Source: Botryllus schlosseri | Taxonomy: Eukaryota | DNA: 64,000 bases | Assembly (NCBI GenBank): GCA_051294905.1 | Contig: CM119374.1 | Location: 8,432,001-8,496,000, forward strand | Reading direction: 5' to 3' | In this document: positions 26,069-33,734 of the stretch, piece by piece | How the letters are laid out: each line of letters opens with the position of its first letter | Position numbering within the stretch: the first letter of the stretch is position 1 | The notes under the pieces: generated by a model | What the model was told of the DNA's origin: nothing | Database searches by the model: none | What the model saw: only the letters and a program-made list of their open reading frames with translations | Translations under genes and position numbers: made by a program

Positions 26069-27372
26069 CAAGTAGGGATGATGTGAACGTGAGGTTCACG
26101 TTCGCGTTCTGTGTGTGAACCTCGGAAAATTTGAGGTTCGCGTTCACAACAGAACCTTGGTAGGTTCTGCACTGTGAACCTTTTTCATATATTGCAATTT
26201 TCACTTCATTATAACATCTTTGGTTCAAATTTATTGACTTTCAACTGCGGGCCACTTGCTATGCATGGAGCTGGCAGCATAAACATTCAACACTAAACGA
26301 GCATGCCCTTGACAATCTCAAAAAATATTGTTACAAAAGTTTGCTCGAAATATCCAGCTTTCCGTTTGTGCATATTTAGTGTCTCTGTGCTGTGAGCTTG
26401 ACCCGCAATCACATGACATCAAGAGTGAAATACACTGTATTTTGTCAGCGAATGATCCTAATTCAACCAATCAATGAGATTGATTTCGTCTTCTGATGTA
26501 AAAATCTAGCAGGCGTACGGGGTCAATCTTGACTAAATATGTATACTGTATCATAAAAACCAGATCCGTGCGACTGAGATGTTGGCTATACTGCTGTATA
26601 ACTTGTTAATGGGGTAATATCGGTAGCAAGTATAGAAACCCATTTTACACTCTGCTCAATATCCGTGTGGCAATACTCAGACGCCGAATATACATTGTCC
26701 GATCAGGTCGAAATTTATGGCAAAGCGACGCAAGATACCGATTTTATGGGATTATTATATCATTTGATTGCCTCAGTTGATACATTTGGCGACGTTTAAA
26801 ACGTCAATATGTATACTTAAGTACTGAGCTATTATGAGGCCCCGAGTCGTCGCTCTATGCAGTACCGGTACTTATGCATTGCTCTAAAGCTCGGTTTTTA
26901 ATTTGTTTTACCTGTAGAATAGATCTCGGTAATAAGAAAAGAAGTCCTGTAATATTGAGATGATTTATGTTGTCATGTTGTAGAATAAGGTGTGTCAATT
27001 ATAGTCAAATAGGTTAGATAAAGTCTATGAAATAAGTTATGCACCAGGCTTCTATAATTGCCGTTTTAGCGAGTGAAGCCATGTGATTTGACAGCGACAT
27101 TGTTATGGAGAGTATATTGTAGAGGCCTTTGCTCAGATAGGAAGTTTATTCACTCAGTCGTACTCAACAATCCAGCAGCGACGAGACCAAACACGAAAAA
27201 GACACACCAATAAAAACTTTTTTCCCCACCACCGCAAATGGTGGGTTTTGTTCTACATATATGTTCTGCATGTGTCGTAAGGTGACCGGAGTCGCGATTA
27301 CATTTATTTCTATATTAAAAAAAAAAAAAAAAAAAAAAATTTTGTGGTAAACTAACAATTATAACAATTTTG

Positions 27373-27394
27373 TGGAGTATTTGGTTGTATTAAG
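27373..27394 (+). other. Spliced-leader sequence at the 5' end of the Tx1 element
   Basis: TGGAGTATTTGGTTGTATTAAG followed by GT matches 22 of the 24 nt of the stolidobranch SL as I recall it. The motif recurs at 32899 and 32955. Confidence 0.7.
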
Positions 27395-28007
27395 GTTCGC
27401 GTAAGTATATAACGGCTATTTACAGGAGCAAGGAACGAACCGGAGCCGCTGTGGCGATAGTTTATACTTACCGTAAACGTTAGTTAATTTTGCAGTACCT
27501 AGGCTAGAATTTTCACTTAGGCTATTTTTCTCCTTCATATTTTCTCCTTTTCATCGACGGATTTCTACTTCTACTTCGGGTCTCCTTCAGACTCAAACCT
27601 CCTCCCTCCTTGGGCCTGACTCGTCTTCGTGAGTCAGGTCTAAAGGAGTCTGTTCCTACCTCCACTAGAGTTTGACTCGTCTTCGTGAGTCAACTCTAGT
27701 CGGAGTCTTTTCTCTTCAAGTCTTGACTCTCTCTCTCGAGTCAAGACTTGTCGAGTCTTTTCTTCTCTCTCGCGCCTCTCCCTTGGGCGACGAGAGACTG
27801 TCTAGCCTTAATTAACAACACGCTACGACACTGTCTAGACAGTGATCGTACGATCTTCCTGCTGTACTGAAACTGCAGTGTCGCCTTTAGCAAAGCGCGC
27901 AGAAAACGCCTCCAAAAACGCTCTATTAAGCGACAGTACAGCTTCGAATTAAAAAGAACGCAGTCTGTAGGCTAGCCCTCAAGCAACAGCAACTTGGCAA
28001 TACACAG

Positions 28008-29255
28008 ATGGCGTACGCAAGTGCACTACTAAACCAAAACAGAAACAGAATAACATATGGCTACAGGCCGCGATCCCTGGATATAGCTGCACCTCTAGGA
28101 AGCAATGCGGTAGACATCATTGACGCAATAACCAAACATCCACTCTTGAAAGAACGAAAGGATACAATAGAATCCATCTTCCAAATAGGAAGATCAACCT
28201 TCAACCTTACCTTCCATACAGAATCCCCTGTAGAAAGCCTGTTAGAAACCTTCCTTCAAGCTACCGAAGAAGGCATAGCAACAGCCACCGGCACATTGCA
28301 CCTTCATAAACCACAATTACCAGCGGTGCAAATCAACATAAGGGCTGTGCCGACAGAAGTAGACAACGAAGAAATAGAGCAAACAATCAACAGGCTTGGA
28401 TGCGGTACAATAAGAACAATCAAACACATCTACCACAGGGGAACCCAAATACACAATGGATACAGACAGGTAACCATCGATAGATACGTGCCTGGGAAAA
28501 TACCACCCTTCCTATATTTAGGCAGAGCGCCCTGCAAGATCTACCTACCTGCAGCCGAAGAGATAAACAGATGTTACAGATGTCTGAGAACAGGGTATAC
28601 CGCAGCAGACTGTCCAAATGAAACGGCCTGCCTACTCTGCAAAGAATACGGCCATAAAAGAGACCAATGTCCAAAAAACAGAAGTCCAGAGGATGAAATG
28701 CAGCTCTCCAACACAAACCCAGGGGAAGAACAAACACAGCCTGAAAATGAACAACAACAACAAACACAGAGCCAACCACCTATAGATAGCCAAAACATCA
28801 TTGAGAACTCTGAGGCCGAGAACTCTGCGGACGAAAAAGAAGATCTACAAGAAGAACCACATGACTTCTTTAACCTAGCAGACAAGACCCCGCCTACACC
28901 AGAAAACTCAGAACTAGATACAACAATAAGACCCGGAGAGGAAACAGAACTCAACAGCGAAAATGAACAAAATAACACAACAGATGAGGAACTGCAAATA
29001 ATAACAAGCGACGAAGAGAAACAACAAGACGCAGAAATAACCCTAACCCAAAAAAAGTCGAAAACAATAAAAAGCCGAACAGGCCAAACGGCAACCATAA
29101 CAAGGAATTGGGAAAGATGAAACTTCACCGCACAGGAATTCTTTAACGCACCCTCACCAAACAAAAGACAACAAAGCGACCGTAGCCCCACGACACAAAA
29201 CGAAAGCTCTGCAAGAAGGAAATTACTGAAAGCAGACATCGAACTGAAAAAGTAG
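28008..29255 (+). CDS. Tx1 ORF1p (RRM-like region, two zinc knuckles, acidic tail); premature TGA at 29118-29120
   Basis: CYRCLRTGYTAADC and CLLCKEYGHKRDQC knuckles. The frame stays open past the TGA to a TAG at 29253-29255, just before ORF2. Confidence 0.85.
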
Positions 29256-29280
29256 CCAGCCCCTGTCCTGTCTAATCCTA

Positions 29281-32200
29281 ATGGCGATGAATATCATATC
29301 CCTAAATGCCAATGGAATGGGAACACATTGGGTAAAAATGAAAAATTTACTCAGATGCGAAAAGAATTGGAATATTATTTGTATCCAAGAAACGCACAGA
29401 GCAGACACAGAGAAAATAGAAAAATGGGCACAACAGAATGACTTACTTTATTATCCAAATCACATTACTGTAGGACAAAATTGGACGGACATGGACGAAA
29501 ACAAAAAACACTACTACAGAGGCACTGGGATATTCGCCAGAAAGGACTTAAAAAATAAATACCACATAAAACACCAGATAGTAAGACAGGACAGGATACA
29601 GACACTACGACTAACCGATAAAGAAACAACCGACATCGCTACCCTATACAATGTGTATGGACCCAGCGATGTCGGAAAATACCAAACTGACTTCTACCGA
29701 GAATTAACATGTCATATAGAAAATAACACCCCTGAGAGCGCGATTATCTGTGGCGACTTTAATGTCGTCACAGATAAGAAAGACTCTAAGAACATCGACA
29801 ATTTCAAACTTACGCCTGCTGCTAAAATATGGAAGACCTTCATAGAAACGAATAAGATCAGAGACATATGGCGTTGGCGAAACCCAAATAAAAAACTATA
29901 TACAGTAATGAAAGCGCATCAATCCCGAAGAGTAGATAGAACCTACGCCTCGGAAAACCTACTCCCGCGGGTGAAAAGAAGCGAATACAAACTCAACAAC
30001 GTAGCTGACCATATATTCATGCAGAAAACACAGGTAGTCGAACCACTGAACATCGCATGGGGAAAACCACTATGGAAAAACGACATCAGACTCTACTCTG
30101 ACGAAACCTTGTACAAAAAAATAAAAATAACCCTTAAAAAATGCGCGAAGAAGAAACATAGCTTTGAAAACGTGTACCAATGGTGGGATTATTTAAAGAA
30201 AGAACTAACCAAACATAGAGGAAAGAAGAAAGATCAACATCCTCAGAGGAAATATAAACCGAATACAAAACAATGTAACTATGGCAGACGAAGCCATAAA
30301 ACAGATAAAGGAACTCAAAAAAGATCGAGAATGACAAACTCTGAGACATAGATGCACGCTTGACAAACTGAGACATAGATGCACGCTTTATAAAATGAGA
30401 GACATAGAGGAGAATGAAAAACCAACGAGATATTTCTTCACAAAAATAGCCCAGCGAAAGCAAAGCAAAATGATTGCAGCAGTTCTAAACCAACGGGGCA
30501 AAGAACTTACAACCAAAGAAGAAATCATCCAAGAGGTTTATGGATTCTACAACAATCTATGGGGGAAATCTCCCAGTGAGAATCCCCGCCTCCAAGAAGA
30601 ATATGCTGCAGAAATTGCGGACATAGAGGCAACCGAACAAGAACGAAAAGACCTCGAAACGCAAATAGACGAGACTGAGATCAAAACGATCCTAAATAAA
30701 ATGGAAAGCGGAAAGACCCCAGGGTCTGACGGGCTCTCCAAAGAATTTTACCAAACCTACTGGTCAATCCTCAAGAAAGACCTACTAGAGGTGATTAATA
30801 ACGCCTACTGCTTTGGAGGCTTGTGTCAAACATGGATGGAGGGCACAACTACCGTAATCTACAAAAAAGGAGAGCCAAAACTTTTAAAAAACTGGAGGCC
30901 AATAACCTTATTAAACACAGATTATAAAATACTAACCAGCATCTTGGCGGCAAGATTGAAACCCATACTCCCAAATTTTATTCTTGGAACACAAAAATGC
31001 GCTATTCGCGGACGACATATAACAGACATACTAAGAAATACTCAGGCAACATTTGAACACGCAACGGAAAGAAAACGAGAACTACTTATTGTAAACTTGG
31101 ACCAGGAAAAAGCTTTTGACACGATTAATCACAAATATCTCTACAGTATACTCGAAAACTACAGACTCCCCAAACCCTTCGTCCAACTGATAAAAAACAT
31201 ATACAACTCCGCAAAAAGCAGAATTCTAGTAAATGGCGCCCTAACAGATCCCATCAACATCAAAAGGGGGATAAGGCAGGGGTGTCCACTGAGCATGTGT
31301 TTATATGCCATCAGCTGTGACCCCCTGGCCAGAAAAATAACGAAAAACGAAAAAATAAGACCTTTCAAAATAGGCAGCGAAAGTATAAAAATACAACAGT
31401 ACGCCGATGATATCACGTGCTACCTTGGGAGAGAGGAGGACATCGATGCCGTATTCGAAGAATTCCAAAAATATGAACGGGCAACCGGGCAAAAATTAAA
31501 TCCAGAAAAAACAGAAATATTGCACATCAATTCGAGAACAGGAGCTAGAACAGGAAAATTCGAGAATCAAAAAAAAGAACGGATTAAAATATTGGGCCAA
31601 TACTTCGGAAAAAACCAATACAATGAAACCTGGACCGAAAACAGACTAAAAATACTACGAACCCTGATGGCCTACAGGCACAGAAAACTGACCTGGATGG
31701 GAAAAAAGGCCATCTTGAACTCCCTGGCAACAACAAAAATTCTGTACAATGCCCGAGTTATACCACCGAGTAAAGAAGATCAAAAAGAACTCGAAAAAAT
31801 ATATTTTAAATTCTTATGGCATCCCCATAAAATGGAGGCAATATCACGAAAAACGCTGATCGCCGAAAGAGAGAAAGGAGGACTCAGAATCCCAGATATA
31901 GAGTCACGCATAAGAGCAATAGAACTCGAAAAAATCGCAACGTTAAAAAATCTGGAAAAACCAACCGAAATATGGCATAAATATGCCATATATGAGGTCG
32001 GAACAAAAATAAAAGCTATACGGCCCAGTCTCTATAACAACAACGAGAGACACAAATATCCTACACCGAAAAGATGGACAGAAAGTATAGACTTGGCGAA
32101 AAAAATCGGATGGGAGGAAGAAGAGTGGAAAGAGAGTTCCCACAAAGAACTGTATAAAGAAATAAAAAATCTCAAAGAAAACGAGATAGAATTCCGAACA

Positions 32201-32740
32201 CAACACGGAAAGAAAATAAAAATGACAAAAATAACCAAAACCAAATGTTTTGGGAAAAACATGATAACTAATAGTGAAATGATCATAAACTATCGAGTAG
32301 CACATGACGGGTATATATTTGGACAGAAAAAAAGAATACGGAACTTAACAGAAGACAAAAATGGCAGGAAATTACTTCTGAACTGCAAATTTTGTAACTC
32401 GAGCAATGATTGCGCAAAACATATATTCACTGAATGCAAATACATCGCAAAATTGAAAAGGAAAATCCAAAAAACGCTAGGACTCGAACTAGACAACGAC
32501 TTAATAATGTACAATACCGGAAGAAAAAAAATCAACTGGATCATTGCATCGATCATGAAAAAGGCGATATTAAACCTGAAGATCGCTCTCGACATTGACA
32601 ATAAAAAAATAGAAAACGAAGGATTGGAGATGAAAATCCTACGAAAAATCAAAAAACGACTAGAAAGCCTAGATAACAACAAACAGGTGACCCAACTAGT
32701 CAAAAAAATAGAGAAAAGACTAGATAGAATAGGAAAATAA
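29281..32740 (+). pseudogene. Tx1 ORF2p (APE endonuclease, RT, C-terminal CCHC), frameshifted near 30240-30395
   Basis: IISLNANG, CIQETH, ICGDFN, RVDRTY, DH; KTPGSDGL, WRPITLLNTDYKIL, DQEKAFD, RQGCPLS, QYADD; CKFCNSSNDCAKHIFTEC. An approximately 27-bp tandem duplication lies at 30341-30395. Confidence 0.93.
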
Positions 32741-32898
32741 TAGCGAAGTGAAAAAAAAGGGCCAAAAAATGGGGGGAAAATGAAGATCAAAAACTCGGAA
32801 AAGACGTGCCACAGAAGAACCAACCTTCTCCTGTGAATGGAAATATCAGGAGGACACAAGACCCACACCCAATGTCAACATAGAGTATCTGAGTTGAG

Positions 32899-32923
32899 AT
32901 TGGAGTATTTGGTTGTAATGAGG
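32899..32923 (+). other. SL-like motif inside the Tx1 3' UTR
   Basis: ATTGGAGTATTTGGTTGTA (19 nt identical to the SL 5' part) followed by ATGAGG instead of TTAAGG. Confidence 0.7.
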
Positions 32924-32924
32924 C

Positions 32925-32955
32925 ACTACGCTTGATCTTAGCCATAAAGGCCGAG
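32925..32955 (-). ncRNA. U2: Antisense fragment of U2 snRNA (about nt 8-37)
   Basis: The reverse complement CTCGGCCTTTATGGCTAAGATCAAGCGTAGT differs from canonical U2 CTCGGCCTTTTGGCTAAGATCAAGTGTAGT by one insertion and one substitution. Confidence 0.88.
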
Positions 32956-33404
32956 GAGTATTTGGTTGTATTAAGGTAAGCATCGGCCTGGCTGATGCGG
33001 AACCCTTGTGGTACAACCGATACTTCCAATCACTTGTACACCTAGGAGAAGTATGGCCGTCAGGCCTTCATGCTCCGCACCGGGATCTGTGTCAGCTTGA
33101 CTGGCCAGTATCCCAGTCACAAGTATGGTGGCGGCGGGACAAGCCTCCGCAGACGCCCCCAGCCAAAGCCTGCTTGTGACAACTGTTTGCACCAACAAGT
33201 GACGAAACTTATTGGAGAAAAAAGCAAACAGGAAGCAACCTTTTGGGAGCTCTTGGGTCCTTTCGACCCAAGAGTGACCTATTAAGGCGCTTGTGGCAAT
33301 AGTCCGGTGGTGTAGTGCCACATGGGCTGCCGCAAGCGTAACGGGGTGGAGGTTTACTGCGGTTCCTCCAGGTTACCCCTAAAAAAAAAAAAAAAAAAAA
33401 AAAA
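32930..33404 (+). mobile_element. 475-bp non-autonomous poly(A) retroelement (SINE-like) with a U2-antisense/SL head
   Basis: Perfect 17-bp TSD TTGTAATGAGGCACTAC (32913-32929, 33405-33421). (A)24 tail. 3' hairpin GTAAC..TGGAGG/CCTCCA..GTTAC. SL GGAGTATTTGGTTGTATTAAG followed by GTAAG at 32955-32980. Confidence 0.88.
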
Positions 33405-33670
33405 TTGTAATGAGGCACTACTGCCCGAAAAGGCGGAAACACAAAAATAAATAAGAGAAAAATAAAGAAGAACCTGTCACACTTGCCTAAGCACTGTTCA
33501 AACCCCTCAGTTAGAAAGGAAAAGGAAAAAAAAATAAAAAATAAAAAAGAAGAACCTCAAAACCCCCAGACCGGAGCAGGCACCTATACCAGATGTAGAG
33601 AGGGCCTGCGATGGTCTGGGTATCCGGAGAGCCGCAAAAAAAAAAAAAAAAAAATATTTATTTCTAGATT

Positions 33671-33691
33671 GTACTCGCTTCGGCGGTACAC

Positions 33692-33727
<36 letters not shown>

Positions 33728-33734
33728 GGCCCCT
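33671..33734 (+). ncRNA. U6: U6 snRNA 5' portion (nt 1-64), interrupted
   Basis: GTACTCGCTTCGGCGGTACACATACTAAAATTGGAACGATACAGAGAAGATTAGCATGGCCCCT includes the ACAGAGA box and compensatory 5' stem changes. I found no U6 3' half in the window. Confidence 0.95.

Follow-up and report, generated by a model that had tools for sequence, protein, structure and literature searches.

A transcribed SINE family with a spliced-leader RNA-type head in Botryllus schlosseri and its probable LINE partners

The SINE copy analysed here belongs, with a probability that we put at about three in four, to a small, transcribed, non-autonomous family with a poly(A) tail and a head of the spliced leader (SL) RNA type, mobilised by LINEs which combine an APE endonuclease with a reverse transcriptase (RT), appear Tx1-like and target the splice donor. 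The copy lies in a window (the whole stretch of DNA that was analysed) of 64,000 nt of B. schlosseri contig CM119374.1 (assembly GCA_051294905.1, positions 8,432,001 to 8,496,000, forward strand). The coordinates of its features are presented in Table 1. All positions refer to the window, and a caret marks a junction or a nick.

Table 1. Features of the SINE copy in the window and of the LINE that carries it.
Feature	Position	Strand	Remark
SL-headed SINE copy	32930-33404	+	475 bp
Left TSD, 17 bp, ttgtaatgaggcactac	32913-32929	+	Identical to the right TSD; single in the empty site L072
Right TSD, 17 bp, ttgtaatgaggcactac	33405-33421	+	Perfect match to the left TSD
A24 tail	33381-33404	+	24 A counted
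5' extension, antisense to U2 snRNA nt ~8-32	32930-32954	+	25 nt, private to the window copy
SL nt 5-25, GGAGTATTTGGTTGTATTAAG, of the 25-nt SL GATTGGAGTATTTGGTTGTATTAAG	32955-32975	+	Equals the published stolidobranch SL
Unspliced 5' splice site GTAAG	32976-32980	+	Directly after the SL; RNA reads cross it unspliced
G^T of the donor	32976^32977	+	In other copies, insertions of the family favour this point
Hairpin GCATCGGC-CTG-GCTGATGC	32980-32998	+	Predicted fold; loop differs among subfamilies
Anti-SL stretch pairing with the SL exon (stem I)	33010-33031	+	Predicted fold
Conserved core	33103-33182	+	97-99% column identity, 42 units
U-run CCUUUUGGG, then hairpin	33237-33274	+	Hairpin kept by compensatory changes
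Structured 3' domain, terminating GGTGGAGG...CCTCCAGGTTACCCCT	33290-33380	+	Compensatory pairs; 47-mer tail found 63 times
SL-like motif GATTGGAGTATTTGGTTGTAATGAG in the 3'UTR of the host LINE	32898-32922	+	SINE sits inside the motif
Host LINE, likely partner type	27317-33654	+	ORF1, APE endonuclease, RT
A19 tail of the host LINE	33636-33654	+	3' end of the composite

The initial annotation had described an insertion of 475 bp with a perfect 17-bp target site duplication (TSD) and an A24 tail, and these were confirmed at exact coordinates. In L072, a paralogous copy of the host LINE, the target is uninterrupted (...ggagtatttggttgtaatgaggcactactgcccg...), and because this paralogue shows the empty site, the insertion and the TSD of the window copy are real. 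The annotated lack of a tRNA, 5S or 7SL head and of an RT was corroborated as well: ARAGORN detected no tRNA in the window copy, Rfam gave no match above the threshold in it (tRNA, 7SL and 5S included), and no ORF of at least 80 aa was found on the plus strand inside 32930-33404. Only one Rfam match deserves mention, a weak one (E 0.037) to U2 in antisense, on the minus strand at 32900-32962. The SL, GTAAG and hairpin of the head are present as had been described, but the first 25 nt of the copy are antisense to U2 and its SL lacks the first four bases, GATT. The reverse complement of 32930-32954 reads CTCGGCCTTTATGGCTAAGATCAAG, and the genome's own U2 reads CTCGGCCCTATGGCTAAGATCAAG. The U2-antisense piece is absent from the other SINE copies, and it joins the SL via a GAG microhomology. 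The arrangement suggests that the upstream DNA end was primed on U2 snRNA during the 5' completion of the window copy; a short antisense copy of U2 snRNA would then have completed its 5' end.

Approximately 210 candidate matches to the family were detected in the genome, and the 50 that were scored were 81-92% identical. With up to 3 mismatches allowed, the genome contains 81 occurrences of the core 38-mer, of which 53 are identical; the tail 47-mer was counted 63 times. Full-length copies start with (GATT)GGAG... and end in an A-run. Own TSDs and A-tails, with the SL inside the TSDs, were determined for L003, L006, L014, L016, L020, L025 and L027; since the SL is enclosed by independent TSDs, the RNA that was retrotransposed included it. 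The family is SINE-like, with elements of about 430 nt plus poly(A). As in classical SINEs, the copies are short, noncoding, multi-copy and provided with a TSD and an A-tail, whereas the head is of the SL type and not of the classical pol III type (tRNA, 7SL or 5S). The copy number is low for a SINE, which speaks against the assignment.

Two 5' classes of SINE units were distinguished, one with the SL and the other starting exactly at the T of GT, and the SL-less units directly follow the poly(A) of another unit. SL-GTAAGCATCG without the SINE core was found at about 17-18 sites of the genome. Two origins that the initial annotation had named as possible refutations were rejected. A single-copy processed pseudogene of a trans-spliced mRNA is ruled out by the multi-copy family with its independent TSDs and by the retained unspliced donor, and a deleted LINE is ruled out as the SL is the only sequence common to the SINE and the LINE.

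Different parts of the element are conserved to different degrees: identity across copies reaches 97-99% in the core and in the last 40 nt, and the intervening regions are subfamily-specific. In an alignment of 21 copies, 12 pairs along the consensus fold were changed on both sides. One stem pair of the head hairpin is exchanged between CG and GC (columns 36/52), compensatory pairs were observed at 415/436, 416/435 and 419/432 in the hairpin at 33250-33274 and at 474/488 and 518/535 in the 3' domain, and in the terminal hairpin GGTGGAGG/CCTCCAGG alternates with GGTGGTGG/CCACCAGG. The 3' end is thus structured, as had been annotated. The copies group in subfamilies, so the compensatory changes represent few independent events; distributed over several helices of the aligned copies, they point to selection on the RNA structure in the source genes.

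The complete SL, GATTGGAGTATTTGGTTGTATTAAG, is the "Chordata 1" leader (PMC3795323), and the supplement of PMC3795323 assigns it to Botryllus schlosseri, Halocynthia roretzi, Boltenia villosa, Herdmania curvata, Polyandrocarpa misakiensis and Styela plicata. Because it is identical to the published leader of these six species, the head carries the real SL of the stolidobranch ascidians. In the 495-Mb assembly, the 25-mer occurred 282 times at up to 1 mismatch and its reversed control 0 times, and the SL exon is identical at all loci. A canonical donor stands directly after the SL in all SINE subfamilies. The anti-SL, GGTACAACCGATACTTCCAATC, follows about 35 nt after the donor, is nearly the reverse complement of the SL and is conserved in all subfamilies. 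The first 100 nt were predicted to fold into an SL:anti-SL stem enclosing the donor and the hairpin (-41.8 kcal/mol, z -5.6), and none of the 200 shuffles folded as well. The same SL/anti-SL layout was found in subfamily c (L039) and in family A (L033). In the predicted fold, this layout is the stem I of an SL RNA.

As in an SL RNA gene, an exact leader exon is followed by GU and is paired downstream in the predicted stem I. No convincing Sm site was found in the head after stem I; the only U-run, 33241-33244, varies among subfamilies. With about 430 nt and an A-tail the element also falls outside the size of SL RNA genes, which are about 46-150 nt and not polyadenylated. Beyond the exon, the likeness of the head to the abundant SL-containing RNAs consists of 12 shared nt and the architecture. 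The comparison of the sequences makes it likely that the head was derived from an SL RNA gene rather than that the SL was added by trans-splicing. The annotated SL-RNA-derived non-autonomous retroelement is supported by the SL, the canonical donor, the anti-SL stem and the RNAs that start with the SL.

Four public RNA-seq runs with the same species label were compared with window positions 32700-33700. In three of the four runs, GATT and then, at 32955, GGAG came after the template-switch oligo (...ACATGGG) in hundreds to thousands of reads; the oligo abuts GATT, therefore the 5' ends of the RNAs are SL nucleotide 1. The SL-start reads cross the unspliced donor up to 32985-32988 as SL^GTAAGCATCGG. 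Among them, 85 reads of X18 and 365 reads of X20 go on into a SINE subfamily, as CCTTACTGGACGCTGGGCGGTGCGAAAC and AGAGAGGCGCTGATCGATGCG..., respectively, and the SINE body is covered by reads in both runs. The strongly expressed X20 variant is an exact match to the L063 copy. The SINE family is currently transcribed. Sequences other than the SINE subfamilies dominate past the donor. The L063 copy is located at the end of contig C14, about 750 bp from a U2 sequence which is on the opposite strand and stops partway.

The dominant read continuations, SL-GTAAGCATCGGC+TGAGTTTTTACATATCGAG... in X20 and +ATTTTCTCGGGC... in X16, were not found in the assembly when up to 3 mismatches were allowed, and the gapped pattern TTAAGGTAAGCATCG N8-36 CCAATCA was not found either; the read consensuses searched had an agreement of only about 0.85, and their absence from the assembly is weak evidence. 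Only the related head of L074 matched the continuation of the dominant SL-containing RNA of X16, over 20 nt. The dominant SL-containing RNAs may be true SL RNAs or polymorphic elements. L074 and the first unit of L022 represent a longer SL-headed non-autonomous family of about 800 nt, which has a short block in common with the SINE and a LINE-like tail ...gggctaaccgaggttaccg-An.

Other kinds of SL-bearing loci were observed in the genome. In family A (L033, L035, L036, L044, L047-L053, L055, L057, L059), the exact SL forms part of a larger repeat which is dispersed and conserved upstream of the SL. Downstream, a AGCTTTGG motif resembling that of Ciona is accompanied by a hairpin, an anti-SL and an apparent coding region, and the nucleotides following the SL vary (GT, GGT, AGT, CT, AT, GC). 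Family A loci may include real SL RNA genes. In family B (L037, L038, L042, L043, L054), which is organised in tandem units of about 1.8-1.9 kb, TGGCTTGGC... comes after the SL and a donor is absent. Partial leader repeats stand beside the SL in L034 (SL+GTTGTATTAAG) and in L029 (GGAGTATTTGGAGTATT+SL); these repeats recall relic leaders, or slippage at the 5' end of an RNA.

The insertion sites of the family were determined from the junctions. The pattern AWWAARRTAAGCATCG resulted in 82 genome matches compared with 6 for the control. ATTAAGG^TAAG junctions accounted for 48 of the 82 matches and AAAAAAA^TAAG junctions for 28, and none was of the An^GTAAG type (AAAAAAG-TAAG). The tails of the SINE and of APE/RT LINEs adjoin G^T(A/G)AGCATCG, i.e. 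the +1/+2 position of the donor. In L071, SL-TAAGCATCGC is followed by 14 nt of SINE tail, A8 and TAAGCATCGC... again; in L065, SL-G-TAAGCATCGGC is followed by 105 nt of LINE tail, A9 and TAAGCATCGGC-SINE; and in L077, a truncated SINE is nested between two TAAGCATCGG repeats. According to these duplications, the inserts entered at G^T and produced TSDs of 10-11 bp; at donor sites overall, the TSDs measure 10-12 bp. In an unrelated MITE-like repeat, the site CCAAATTTGG^TGAGCATCGTTT has been struck at the same point at least 6 times, by the SINE, by a LINE tail and by another SL-headed family; the TSDs there measure 7, 11, 12 and 12 bp.

The tails of at least 5 LINE types adjoin ^TAAGCATCG, those of the window LINE type in L067 and L072. 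SINE tails also adjoin LINE heads just after SL-G (^TAACACGCG, ^TATCACGCG, ^TTGCAACC). Among the 33 non-redundant SINE 3' junctions sampled, 18 were located at TAAGCATCG, at TGAGCATCG or in a LINE head after SL-G. About half of the sampled copies are at other sites, and the targeting is a preference and not strict. The LINE-An-SINE-An-LINE arrays on contig C14 result from repeated insertion into the preceding head. Half of the An^TAAGCATCG junctions (14 of 28) are in two regions of C14, at 22.16-22.30 Mb and 24.05-24.66 Mb (G000), where long LINE-SINE arrays and genes or pseudogenes of U2 are located as well.

The ORF2 of the host LINE contains the APE (PF03372) and RT (PF00078) domains and is split near 30350-30395. 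The 5' end of this LINE consists of A23, 34 nt, SL(5-25), G and TTCGCG... (TTCGCGTAAGTATATAACGGCTATTTACAG...). A full SL was found at the 5' ends of other copies of the LINE, L046 and L058, and the LINE 5' ends read SL+G+T.... Homologues of the LINE protein add a zf-RVT domain, and one 33%-identical homologue is named 'Transposon TX1' by its source; the partner LINE appears to be Tx1-like. The A23 and the 34 unrelated nt which precede the SL of the LINE (27317-27373) look like a short 5' template switch onto another poly(A) RNA. The LINE composite is flanked by an imperfect duplication of about 16 bp, a(c/t)atttatttcta(t/g)att, at 27300-27316 and 33654-33670. It stops 16 bp upstream of a U6 sequence (33671-33734), which matches only positions 1-62 of the model and then breaks off. 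A related LINE contig from another species, L083, stops before the LINE 5' end.

The initial annotation had suggested searching for an autonomous LINE with the same 3' end. None was found: neither the window LINE nor the LINE tails in 80 loci resemble the SINE 3' tail. With 63 occurrences the tail is nearly as frequent as the core with 81, which means that it is not common to any further abundant family. The partnership of the SINE and the LINEs is one that we infer from the head and the targets shared by their sequences, and the SINE tail is presumably recognised via its poly(A). A different arrangement was observed in L040, L045, L056 and L060, which are LINE-like. In these four, a 5'UTR and ATG come immediately after the SL, a donor is lacking, and the upstream flanks differ from locus to locus. 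They look like retrocopies of trans-spliced element mRNAs, and their SL without a donor means that transposable element transcripts can acquire the SL by trans-splicing here.

The annotated targeting of the SL is real at G^T(A/G)AGCATCG, but it does not concern the SL in general, and the window copy itself is off-register. Its position is in the SL-like motif GATTGGAGTATTTGG^TTGTAATGAG, with the nick after TTTGG and not at a donor. No recurrent insertion at TTTGG^TTGTA inside SLs was found; the window copy is the only one in this register, which is unused elsewhere. Because a chance landing in an SL-like motif is unlikely, the window copy is best read as an event of relaxed specificity, which would be an off-register insertion into the SL-like motif of a LINE 3'UTR. 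The motif, ATTGGAGTATTTGGTTGTAnTnAG, is conserved in the 3'UTRs of several LINE families (L065, L069, L072, L073), roughly 250-450 nt upstream of the LINE poly(A), and is followed by GTA in L069 and L073. Target pairing and protein binding are possibilities for its role.

The proposed explanation is as follows. The head would be a module made of the 25-nt SL, the donor GTAAG, the hairpin and the anti-SL which closes stem I, and the structured body and the tail would both be evolving under RNA-structure constraint. The RNA starts from SL nucleotide 1 and is copied whole, with the SL included, into TSD-flanked sites. The target choice is seen at the junctions, and the enzyme would be provided by the APE+RT LINEs with SL+G 5' ends. 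The preferential nick would be made between G and T of GG^T(A/G)AGCATCG, the donor of the SL-type head, and the LINE endonuclease would cut the bottom strand opposite G^T of GGTAAGCATCG. The target sequence of the donor type would be GGTAAGCATCGG, with the look-alike TGAGCATCG in the MITE-like repeat also used. Each SL-headed copy would become a new landing pad, and SL-less head-to-tail arrays would accumulate behind a single SL. The SL+G may provide a 5' arm of homology and might also be a promoter element; with another SL head as the target, a seamless 5' junction would result.

The same head could in principle have been obtained by adding the SL afresh, by trans-splicing, to a noncoding RNA precursor which started by chance with GTAAG, so that the family would consist of the retrocopies of this product. 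A copy-encoded SL could also function as acceptor (...UAUUAAG^G), a new SL taking its place. Non-GT sequence follows the SL in L040, L045, L056 and L060, trans-splicing has been suggested as the cause of partial leaders at flatworm LTR and LINE loci (PMC12582326), and the RNA 5' ends at SL nucleotide 1 fit both models. However, the canonical donor is right after the SL in all subfamilies, the anti-SL makes a stem I like that of an SL RNA, the 12 nt after the SL are identical in the abundant SL-containing RNAs, and the SL-less units come from insertions at G^T with TSDs and not from unspliced precursors. An origin by trans-splicing is considered unlikely on these grounds. The SL-less units have a further conceivable source, an RNA cleaved at the 5' splice site and reverse-transcribed with template switching onto poly(A) RNAs, which agrees with units that begin exactly at donor +2 and always after poly(A). 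This is hardly credible, as the G is never retained (An^GTAAG in 0 of 82), truncated inserts are flanked by TAAGCATCGG(C) duplications, the same 3' junction occurs at the unrelated TGAGCATCG site with differing TSD lengths, and LINE-SINE-LINE arrays of more than 13 kb are implausible as single events.

The exact SL, the donor and the stem I of the head would equally be expected of working SL RNA genes which form a retro-dispersed, poly(A)-tailed family, with the LINEs as its parasites. The strong conservation of the core, the compensatory changes in the helices and the abundance of SL-GTAAGCATCGG RNAs are in accordance with working genes, and no short canonical SL RNA gene with the same intron start was found in the assembly. 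In contrast, about 430 nt plus poly(A) is far beyond the known SL RNAs, that of Ciona being 46 nt (PMC7986045), no conserved Sm site is present, and the Ciona-like AGCUUUGG motif is found at other SL-bearing loci, those of family A; the exon, being identical everywhere, hides the use of the donor. Taken together, working SL RNA genes are quite improbable as the explanation of the family. It is a tentative thought, with rather low odds, that both the SL-headed SINEs and the LINE heads of SL+G are live transcription units of the SL RNA type, some of which donate their leader to mRNAs. The leader would then be an internal promoter element and the site of the trimethylguanosine cap. If true, the stolidobranch SL RNA gene family would be propagated and renewed by retrotransposition, and the donor-nicking LINEs would be co-transcribed from, and co-evolving with, the trans-splicing apparatus.

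With the preferred reading, that of an SL-headed SINE family mobilised by donor-targeting LINEs, SL RNA would join the short list of small RNAs that founded SINE heads, and the LINE partners would carry the same head and aim at its splice donor. The family would offer a system to study how a head of the pol II small-RNA type keeps a retroposon transcribed, how an APE-type LINE gains a target previously known only for LINEs with a restriction-like endonuclease, and how mobile elements and trans-splicing influence one another among the closest relatives of chordates. Pipelines which search for "SL + GU" would collect these SINEs and arrays as SL RNA genes or pseudogenes in ascidian genomes.

The relic SLs of dinoflagellates are retrocopies carrying trans-spliced leaders. 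The present family resembles them and the flatworm loci (PMC12582326) in having a genomic SL at the 5' ends of retrocopies. In the dinoflagellate and flatworm retrocopies the SL is joined to a mature exon, whereas here the donor and the stem of the SL RNA type are kept. CRE/SLACS/CZAR and NeSL elements insert inside the SL exon, and SLACS transcripts start at +1 of the interrupted SL gene. CRE/SLACS/CZAR of trypanosomatids and NeSL-1 of nematodes are LINEs using SL genes as a safe multicopy target, and CRE/SLACS/CZAR and NeSL encode a restriction-like endonuclease (PMC4640811). In contrast, the endonuclease here is of the APE type, the site is the exon/intron boundary at +1^+2, the targeting is preferential, and a non-autonomous SL-headed partner is present. 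In Ciona, the SL RNA is 46 nt long with the Sm motif AGCUUUGG, and pseudogenes are 'rife' (PMC7986045, citing Yeats et al. 2010). The SL exon followed by GU and the dispersed copies are common to the Ciona genes and pseudogenes and to the present family, which differs in its length of about 430 nt, structured body, A-tail, TSDs, subfamilies and LINE-type insertion preference, and which is a propagating family and not a set of scattered dead copies.

The closest precedent is that of crocodilian SINEU and Tx1-Mar (Kojima 2015), in which snRNA-derived heads are common to the SINE and the Tx1 LINE, the specific targets are common too, and the transcription of SINEU is unexplained (PMC4494074). The initial annotation had considered the element a candidate for a new, apparently undescribed SINE class. 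No description of an SL-RNA-headed SINE was found in the literature searched, but "class" is too strong a term in view of SINEU/Tx1-Mar (PMC4494074). The common head and the common insertion sites of LINE and SINE, which characterise the SINEU type, were found here as well. In both systems, the head comes, in the present family probably, from a small RNA of the Sm class and pol II type, some LINE partners, which belong to the Tx1 clade in SINEU and appear Tx1-like here, share it, and pieces of small RNAs have repeatedly been added at 5' ends. The systems differ in that the head here is an SL RNA module with exon, donor and anti-SL and not U1 or U2, in that the head's own splice donor is the preferred target, which results in self-targeting and arrays, in that RNAs from head nucleotide 1 were detected, none having been found for SINEU, and in that the host is a tunicate. 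Relative to SINEU, the type of the head, the self-targeting of the splice donor and the RNAs starting at head nucleotide 1 set the present family apart.
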